64,000 nt of DNA, taken from positions 722,964 through 786,963 of the forward strand of contig CAJFCJ010000026.1 of NCBI GenBank assembly GCA_904063045.1. The letters run 5' to 3'. The notes under the pieces are model-generated. The model was not told where the DNA came from, searched no databases, and saw only the letters and a list, made by a program, of their open reading frames with translations. The stretch comes from Dimorphilus gyrociliatus (taxonomy: Eukaryota > Animalia > Annelida). The first letter of the stretch is position 1. Each line of letters starts with the position of its first letter. Shown here piece after piece: positions 17,632 through 19,880 of this stretch. Position numbers and translations under genes: made by a program.

Positions 17632-19102
17632 CTCTAACATTCCGTTCAATTGTATTCATTTTAAATTAGTCTAAGACGGAAAGAACAAACCAAGCAACAT
17701 TCCATTCAGGTAATCAGAATGCTCTTGGATTGGTCTATTCTTCGGACACTGTAGGCTTACATTCACAATTAAAAGTGCGTTTCGAATAATAAAACGGCCT
17801 TCGGTTAAGAGTTGGACAAAATAATTAATATTAAATAAGGGATAGCGATGAGGTCGCGTTAGGATATTCTTCTCCGGGATATCATTCCCTATCATTCTTT
17901 ATTTTTTTCCATATTATCTACGTTGTTTAAGCAATATCTTAGCTTTTCCCCGAATTCCTGTCCATATATAGATAGATGGATTAACAGAAGATTACATGCG
18001 ATCTTCTTATGATCATCCTACAAGACTGTTGATTTGTTGATTTGTTGTTCTGTTGATCTATTGATGAAGCCAATCTATCTCTTCTAAGATACTAAAATCT
18101 TGATAAGCCCAATCAAAAAGACGTTATTATTATATAGAAAATTGGTCGTTAGATTAGAGATTCGTATGATAAGAATCGTTCTTTTCCTTTCATTTCGCTA
18201 TTTACAACGCGTTCTATTCATTGACGGTAAATTGTAAACGAGGATAAGGAGTTGTATCATAGATATCCTTATTCGTCCTCGTAAATACAATCATTATTAT
18301 CCAACAAATGTTTCACCTTTTCCCGTGATCATCGTTGAAAAATGACCCAGAAATCGGATTCATCATTATTATCATTATTATCATGCAATTTTGAATGAAC
18401 GTTAAACGCCTTCTTTATACTCTTGTAGACGCCTTTTCATCATTCATACCCCTTCACTCTTCCTCCTCTTTACACTGTACATTTCAGTAATTTGTTCGTT
18501 TTCCTACTTTTTTCAAAGATAAGGGAGTTGTATGATAGATATCATTCATTTTTCTAAAAACTTGCAATTTGAACGAAATTTTCGTTTCGTATTTCCCACA
18601 AATATCACGCAAACGACAGAGTACGAAAAATAAGGGTAGACGCCTCAAAGTAACGCCATAAAACGGTAAAAAATAAGCGTTATGTTTAATCGTTATTTTC
18701 TCTTTGACAATAGCTTTTTAAAGGGAAAAAAAGCGAGTATCCATTAGTTTGGGGAAGGTAGAACAATAATTAACTGTGGGAAGAGAGTAGAACGATGGAA
18801 GAGAGGAGAAAATGGAAGATTAAGATTAGAGAATTTTTTACGAAGGATAAAAAAATCGAACCTGAAATTTGGACGATGAAAAGTATAAAAAAAGGTATAA
18901 AAGTTGTTTTTTAGTTGTTTACGAATTGAATTTTTTAAGTTGTCGAGTTTGACGATTGATGGAGATCCTACAATGGAAACCCCGTCTTATAAATTGAGTA
19001 TATGATACATTTGAACCCCCTTTCAAAATGTTGAAACTGTACTTAAAAAACGCTGCCAACGTGTCACTTGAACAGTATAAAAGGTGAGGCGAAAGCATTA
19101 GT
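17632..19102 (+). repeat. Left arm of ~1.47 kb inverted repeat
   Basis: Reverse complement of 23115-24625. Central ~1.1 kb is nearly identical and both ends are more diverged. Confidence 0.95.
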
Positions 19103-19880
19103 TGTCAAAAGTTTTCAGAATGATTGTCTAAAAGCCGAAGAAAGTCGAAAGCTTAAGCTTCAGCTTAAGCTAATGCTGAAGGGCATGGCGAAGCCTACGA
19201 AAGGCATTGAGCTGTCCGCTTTCGGTTAGAAAATGGAGTTTGCATAACGATTCACCGTAAGTAATTAATTTTAAATTGTTTGTCATGTATATATATATAT
19301 ATAAAGTTTGTTTGTTTGTTTGTAGCAATATTCTTCGTAAGTCTACTACGATGGTGTCTGTAGATAAGAGATTTCGAGTAAGTATTAGAATATTGAATAG
19401 AATTGTTGCTATGTTCTGATAATAGATTACCCAATTAGATCCAAAAATTTATCATTCATTCCCATACCAGAAATAAACTGAAGGTATTTTATGCCATCTG
19501 TCAAATTTTGGGGTCCGCGATGACCCCTCCTTGGTTGGTAAGTAGAAATTTGAATTTGAATAAGCGTTGATTATTTACTGAATGTTTTTGTTAACAGCCA
19601 GACGAGAGCGCCAAGAGGGAGGTTACAATAACCTCCCGCCACCCAGGATGTGAAACCTGGGTAACTTTGACAGATTGGCCGTTCTAGAAGAACATTTTTT
19701 CACGAACAAGGCCTAAGGAGAAAGCCCGAGCAAACTTCTTAAACAAAGCAATAAGAGCAAACAATAGCAATGAAAAAAGAGGAATAGGGGAAACCCGTAT
19801 TTTTCAAGACATCAATCAACTCTAACAAATACGTAACGAAACAATTAATAGCGTTCCTTTTTGACAATAAAATCTGGAAA
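19100..19880 (+). ncRNA. Putative spliced, highly structured lncRNA (exons ~19100-19256, 19326-19377, 19426-19537, 19598-~19880)
   Basis: TATAAAAG at 19076, three GTAAGT..AG introns of 69, 48 and 60 bp, GC-rich exons with many stems, no long ORF, AATAAA near 19865. Confidence 0.5.

Follow-up and report, generated by a model that had tools for sequence, protein, structure and literature searches.

A putative RNA gene with an unusually stable predicted fold lies in the genome of the annelid Dimorphilus gyrociliatus, within a 64-kb stretch (contig C26:722964-786963 of a 77.9-Mb assembly; ~30% GC, AT-rich animal DNA) that is referred to here as the window and from whose first letter all positions are counted. 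On the plus strand, between 19098 and 19890, the sequence reads as a lineage-restricted, probably non-coding RNA that would be transcribed by RNA polymerase II (Pol II) and spliced, with a structured core that loops out its third intron. This reading is held tentatively, at a probability of about 0.4, and we infer the transcription, the exact splice sites and any function. A preliminary description of the same DNA had proposed a novel spliced structured RNA. The gene-like unit, the exceptional intron-spanning fold and the lack of an Rfam counterpart have all been borne out, but a second junction and a switch that were placed in exon 1 have found no support.

The intron-spanning junction

At the centre of this reading stands a closed junction formed by the last two predicted exons, exons 3 and 4:

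19493-19679, plus strand: five-way junction core, made of a closing stem and four arms, one of which holds a 60-nucleotide (nt) intron

The closing stem has 13 pairs and one bulged base (19493-19505 with 19666-19679). The four arms are GGGGTC/GACCCC, CTTGG/CCAAG with intron 3 in its loop, GGGAGGTTA/TAACCTCCC and (A)CCCAGG/CCTGGG(T). This junction is both the minimum free energy (MFE) structure and the centroid structure of the unspliced segment 19441-19690. The multi-way junction in exons 3 and 4 that the preliminary description had drawn is thus recovered with every helix it had named and in the same place, including the CTTGG/CCAAG stem with the 60-nt intron in its loop.

The fold is far more stable than expected from composition. 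The unspliced segment has an MFE of -74.8 kcal/mol against -55.2 +/- 4.4 kcal/mol for dinucleotide shuffles (z -4.44), none of 200 shuffles being as good. For the spliced folds, the predicted intron 19538-19597 was deleted computationally from the window sequence before folding. The resulting 133-nt core folds at -64.1 kcal/mol (z -6.75) with 44 pairs at a mean pair probability of 0.95; z is -5.57 for exon 3 joined to the first part of exon 4 and -5.89 for the entire 596-nt spliced model. The comparison with shuffles that had been suggested as a check on exons 3 and 4 therefore came out in favour of a structure, at z -4.44 unspliced and -5.57 to -6.75 spliced. A genomic control gave the same picture: among 3751 windows of 193 nt taken from 180 kb of this genome, no other had so low a raw MFE as the segment 19489-19681, or so extreme a residual after correction for GC content (-4.85 standard deviations, sd).

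Perfect hairpins are likewise concentrated here. When these are defined as GC-containing, with a stem of at least 6 and a loop of 3-10, five of the eight in the whole window fall within 19150-19662. Across 200 kb of this contig such hairpins occur at a background rate of 0.18 per kb, never three of them inside 600 nt; the density at the locus is ~50 times that background. The other three lie at 22631-22649, within a second predicted transcript (the twin transcript, discussed later in the text), and outside both transcripts at 57192-57217 (GGAAACGCT...AGCGTTTCC, a 9-bp stem) and 10930-10946 (GTGGGC...GCCCAC).

Anatomy of the predicted unit and its promoter copies

The junction is part of what is plausibly, taking the sequence signals together, a coherent Pol II unit on the plus strand, spliced and polyadenylated. 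Its predicted parts are the following.

17625-19087, plus strand: promoter arm, the left arm of an inverted repeat with 23128-24632
19076-19083, plus strand: TATA box TATAAAAG, identical in the left and right promoter copies
19097-19103, plus strand: initiator-like CATTAGT, 21-27 nt past the TATA box and the last block in common with the promoter of the twin transcript
19098-19256, plus strand: predicted exon 1, 42% GC, with four upstream ATGs and two perfect hairpins that exclude each other
19257-19325, plus strand: predicted intron 1, 69 nt, GTAAGT...TTGTAG, 17% GC
19326-19377, plus strand: predicted exon 2, 52 nt, 37% GC, with an ATG at 19351 in an A(-3)/G(+4) context
19378-19438, plus strand: predicted intron 2, 61 nt, GTAAGT...AATTAG, 26% GC, with a CTGAT branch-like site
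19439-19537, plus strand: predicted exon 3, 99 nt, 39% GC, with frame 0 open from first to last base
19538-19597, plus strand: predicted intron 3, 60 nt, GTAAGT...AACAG, 25% GC, in the loop of the CTTGG/CCAAG arm
19598-19890, plus strand: predicted exon 4, a structured part of 54% GC followed by a 200-nt AT-rich tail (34% GC)
19866-19871, plus strand: AATAAA poly(A) signal

What would be expected of a spliced, polyadenylated Pol II RNA is present on one strand: a core promoter, GT-AG introns typical of the species and a poly(A) signal. The similarity between the left and right promoter copies ends at CATTAGT, and transcription therefore likely starts in that region. The donor motif GTAAGT occurs four times within 282 nt on the plus strand and not at all on the minus strand, against an average of 0.27 per kb in the window, and this is the only such cluster that the window contains. 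The three predicted introns (acceptors at 19325, 19438 and 19597) have lengths at the species median: the published D. gyrociliatus genome is described as 73.8 Mb, with a median intron of 66 bp and without trans-splicing (PMC7854359), a description with which the assembly size and the very short introns found here agree. The fourth perfect GTAAGT lies inside exon 2 at 19337, where it is either unused or alternative. Joined to the acceptor at 19438 it would delete the ATG of a 71-codon open reading frame (ORF) considered in the next section; it could serve either as an alternative donor or as a decoy for U1.

The GC-rich exons and three short consensus introns noted in the preliminary description hold up well on measurement. 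The steps in GC content coincide with the predicted junctions, the exons lying at 36-54% and the introns at 17-26%. In a genome of 30% GC this contrast argues that selection holds the exons GC-rich while the introns drift. Outside the junction the RNA would be largely unstructured in its last part, the AT-rich tail of exon 4 folding at z -1.0.

In the mechanism proposed here, transcription from the TATA-plus-initiator promoter would yield ~800 nt of pre-RNA that carries a poly(A) signal and three short GT-AG introns. The mature product, most likely non-coding, would be ~600 nt long. The CTTGG/CCAAG arm, built from two exon ends, would loop out intron 3 and hold its splice sites ~20 nt apart. 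After splicing the arm would close as a compact hairpin, leaving the 133-nt module as a rigid GC-rich domain in an AT-rich RNA. This module would presumably be the working part, as a protein-docking or stabilising domain, and the fold may also help to define the short intron 3.

The promoter is not unique within the window. The arms of the inverted repeat are ~1.46 kb long, with 974 nt at 100% identity, and face inward around a lectin-like gene. In addition to the identical inverted copy 4 kb away there is a diverged third copy 10 kb away, at ~29028-29260, in which an upstream module of ~130 nt (AAATTTGGACGAYGA ... AAGTTRTCGAGTTTGA ... GAGATCCTA) persists at ~29028-29160. Pattern and BLAST searches of the 77.9-Mb genome found just these three copies of the module, all of them in the window. 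Behind the right copy lies the predicted twin:

22525-23110, minus strand: predicted twin transcript, with introns 23022-22966 and 22908-22853, both with GTAAGT donors

The twin is unrelated in sequence to the left transcript and has no ORF longer than ~22 codons under the predicted model. The end of its exon 1, GGTTGGTCAGAAAA (23038-23025), pairs with the start of its exon 2, TTTTCCGACCAGCC (22965-22952), in 13 of 14 positions with the intron in the loop, and the segment from exon 1 through the intron to exon 2 folds at z -3.26. Splicing of the twin would bring the two arms together as a palindrome of 30 nt, near-perfect and with its centre no more than 1 nt from the exon junction. The occurrence of an intron within an exonic helix twice behind the same promoter is suggestive, though not statistically strong; behind the third copy nothing comparable was found (z -0.8).

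A bolder form of the proposal takes the 133-nt junction as the functional module of a new, annelid-restricted family, with a fold that only splicing completes; a helix between exons would loop out the intron, so that correct splicing and correct folding would depend on each other. The twin RNA would follow the same design, and the two would found a new class of RNAs that are small, spliced and structured, with the lectin-like gene between them as a possible target of regulation. We regard this extended version as unlikely.

Searches for relatives and competing explanations

Relatives were sought at several levels. Rfam 15 run on the unspliced DNA reported, at its gathering threshold, only three tRNA-Cys genes in the whole window, in keeping with the preliminary remark that no Rfam family could be recognised. 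When the search of 18800-20100 was relaxed to expectation values (E) of up to 10, the best match had E 0.62 and covered a single hairpin (19 bits against a threshold of 50). None of the self-cleaving ribozymes (hammerhead, twister, twister-sister, hatchet, pistol and HDV-like) gave a model match at E up to 10. A tRNA or tRNA-like RNA, which needs a 7-bp acceptor stem, a 7-nt anticodon loop and the T-loop consensus, was rejected by both ARAGORN and RF00005. A telomerase RNA, whose template should complement at least ~1.5 telomeric repeats on the transcribed strand, was discarded as no 7- or 8-mer of (CCCTAA)n occurs on the plus strand of 19100-19900; the only nearby match to a telomeric template, at 23060, is antisense to the twin transcript. 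For a small nuclear RNA (snRNA) or spliced leader (SL) RNA, a single-stranded Sm site between hairpins and an snRNA-type promoter would be needed, yet most of AAAUUUUGG (19503-19511) is base-paired in the fold and Rfam returned no snRNA match, and SL RNAs are further disfavoured in a species without trans-splicing (PMC7854359). A microRNA precursor needs an imperfect stem of ~30 bp from which a 22-nt duplex can be cut, while here the longest local arms are of 9 bp and the 13-pair closing stem encloses 160 nt.

A transposon or other repeat was set aside as the 781-nt region is single-copy: in the 77.9-Mb genome neither it nor the twin transcript nor a covariance model of the core matches anything but itself. 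The model, built on the unspliced core (193 positions, 41 pairs), finds itself at 258 bits, and its next matches, at E ~0.4, cover the AT-rich intron part only. A foreign, bacterial or viral, origin of the GC-rich core was also rejected. Exact-pattern scans of viral and metagenome contigs were empty, and matches of one 18-mer to prokaryotes (29 in 596 Gb, extending for at most 20 nt) are at chance level.

Several observations weigh against an RNA gene of the kind proposed. In the searches made, no homologue or paralogue appeared at the level of DNA, protein or covariance model. The three transcripts behind the paralogous promoters share no DNA or peptide similarity, a hint that the transcribed parts evolve freely. 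In the spliced core 43 of the 44 pairs are Watson-Crick, with a single G-U, and the opposite strand folds equally well (z -4.57); structure therefore says nothing about strand. An old constraint acting on RNA alone, under AT-biased mutation, should have gathered G-U pairs. Exon 1 is no more stable than its shuffles (z -0.77 alone, -0.84 with exon 2). Two overlapping perfect hairpins are present in it (-12.1 and -10.0 kcal/mol), but the pairs of the alternative hairpin CTTCAGC/GCTGAAG reach a mean probability of 0.03, compared with 0.81 in AGCTTAAGC, and the proposed outer helix reaches only about one-third of the possible pair probability. With folding energies at shuffle level and pair probabilities so low, neither the second junction nor the switch between mutually exclusive hairpins that the preliminary description saw in exon 1 is supported.

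Many of the same observations fit a young and possibly neutral cluster of palindromes. On this explanation, perfect inverted repeats arose at the DNA level in fast-evolving sequence that follows a duplicated promoter, for instance when replication switched templates; this sequence may be transcribed, but its fold would have no RNA function. Template switching is a documented source of perfect RNA hairpins (PMC8794818), including de novo microRNAs (PMC10710096), and the locus resembles its products in the perfect Watson-Crick arms, the strand symmetry, the overlapping and mutually exclusive repeats of exon 1 and the lack of relatives anywhere in the genome. The near-purity of the Watson-Crick pairing together with the unrelated transcripts behind paralogous promoters fits such a young origin. 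However, template-switch events usually leave single hairpins, whereas five nested or adjacent perfect hairpins within 190 nt would need several independent events at one place, and 200 kb of the contig hold no comparable cluster. The helices are not scattered but close into one junction, and GC-rich arms that end at the splice sites, with AT-rich introns between them, are hard to explain without selection on a mature RNA. The last two features weigh against a purely neutral origin, and we consider this explanation somewhat unlikely.

The spliced, non-coding RNA favoured here must also be set against a gene for a small protein. The preliminary description had seen no substantial ORF, which proved to be incorrect, as one is joined across three exons by the predicted splicing:

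19351-19687, plus strand: 71-codon ORF in exons 2-4, from ATG 19351 to the stop TAG at 19685-19687

On this explanation the transcript would be the mRNA of an orphan 71-residue protein, with the fold a feature of its coding region serving, for example, translational control or stability. The ORF runs without interruption through three exons, taking 9 codons from exon 2, the full 33 of exon 3 and 29 from exon 4, and is crossed by two phase-0 introns. Its ATG has A at -3 and G at +4, its stop lies 6 nt beyond the closing stem, and the layout is mRNA-like, with a ~180-nt leader, the ORF, a 200-nt tail and AATAAA. Against this, 8-9% of 5000 composition-matched shuffles contain an ORF as long or longer (P 0.08-0.09), and the spliced core is just as open in its antisense frame. 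Openness on both strands is expected, since GC-rich palindromes lack the AT-rich stop codons. The codon score of -0.127 per codon lies ~5 sd below that of local genes (0.178 +/- 0.060 for chunks of the same size from 16 long ORFs of the window) and also below the 5th percentile (0.085) of real 72-codon chunks, and GC at third codon positions is 51% as opposed to 25% in local genes. Exon 1 places four ATGs with short ORFs upstream. Searched exon by exon, the peptide matched no Pfam family and had no paralogue in the genome; a word search of the pieces, which covered proteins of 24-75 residues, was negative, and when the exon 3 peptide was run through HMMER in full against 1.84 billion representative proteins nothing of any length matched, so that exon 3 is absent from the predicted proteins of all assemblies covered. 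The pieces have no similarity to the twin transcripts. The ORF is probably incidental and a coding role unlikely; as an account of the whole locus, a small-protein gene seems quite unlikely.

Finally, it is very improbable that the locus is not an independent RNA gene at all and instead provides alternative 5' leader exons of the lectin-like gene starting at 20366, or palindromes that act as protein-binding or cruciform sites in double-stranded DNA to regulate that gene. In favour of this are the shared orientation with the lectin-like ORFs ~480 nt downstream, the promoter pair that brackets the gene and the strand symmetry of the palindromes. Against it, AATAAA at 19866 precedes the gene, the gene has its own ATG, signal-peptide-like start and upstream TATA-like sequence, and the donor cluster and the exon/intron GC steps point to a unit at the RNA level.

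Known systems, neighbouring genes and significance

The nearest known counterparts of the proposed RNA are lineage-specific, spliced and polyadenylated long non-coding RNAs (lncRNAs) with structured modules. These, too, are made from Pol II-type promoters, have short GT-AG introns and carry a poly(A) signal; they lack a convincing ORF, and a single compact domain of several helices stands out from RNA that is otherwise unstructured. The present locus differs in that the searches found no orthologue and in that its predicted module is of unusual stability, contains hardly any wobble pairs and is built from two exons.

Helices in pre-mRNA are known to loop out introns and to bring splice sites together through conserved complementary regions (PMC8052449, PMC2724269, PMC4574748). 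The complementary segments that flank an intron here, CTTGG/CCAAG in the left transcript and the 14-position arms with 13 pairs in the twin, are similar in arrangement. The known cases are mostly intronic boxes in protein-coding genes, whereas the arms of the present locus are predicted to be exonic and to be kept in the mature RNA within a larger junction.

Other likenesses are more superficial. The order of the arms (closing stem, arm 1, intron-looped arm 2, long arm 3 and arm 4) resembles that of a class II tRNA with its long variable arm, and the likeness stops there: the closing stem has 13 pairs, the loop sizes are wrong, there is no T- or D-loop consensus and the intron is of the spliceosomal type. 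A multi-helix junction beside splice sites also brings to mind eukaryotic riboswitches that work through splicing, such as those for thiamine pyrophosphate (TPP), and aptamers with a five-way junction, such as the lysine riboswitch. The locus differs from these in having no covariance-model match at E up to 10 and no ligand-binding consensus, and the alternative fold proposed for exon 1 is unsupported.

The lectin-like gene between the promoter arms (20366-22461, plus strand) has several exons and a signal-peptide-like start, and belongs to a family with similar ORFs elsewhere in the window, at 3086-3784, 9123-9662, 51700-52887 and 60994-61698. Two exon pieces were tested without a Pfam match, and a word search with one exon found nothing, probably because of the length limits of that search. 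The three tRNA-Cys(GCA) genes, at 24933-25004 (minus), 25389-25461 (minus) and 28799-28870 (plus), have similar flanks and an inverted arrangement. Genes of this set stand just upstream of the right and third promoter copies, suggesting that a unit of tRNA plus promoter went through an inverted segmental duplication at an earlier time. An ORF at 25732-26085 (minus) with a hydrophobic tail gives a weak, Quiver/Ly-6/uPAR-like match whose E of 0.004 falls short of the Pfam threshold; it possibly encodes a three-finger protein anchored by glycosylphosphatidylinositol. A large polycystin-1-like gene occupies 29650-38334 (minus); PLAT/LH2, Polycystin_dom and PKD_channel domains are found in its ORFs 29650-31398 and 31429-33909, and further upstream ORFs on the same strand, as far as 38334, are assumed to be part of it.

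If the RNA is expressed and truly folds this way in vivo, it would offer a rare example from animals of a domain in a non-coding RNA that is put together across a splice junction; the genome that holds it is very compact, and little of its sequence is expected to lack function. If instead the locus is not expressed or not conserved, it carries a caution that extreme z-scores and gene-like signals can arise in orphan sequence, and that GC-rich palindromes alone can create long open frames on both strands. Should the proposed reading be true, the single-copy, 133-nt and extremely stable module would offer a tractable model for the origin of structured RNAs, in which selection could be set against template-switch mutation.

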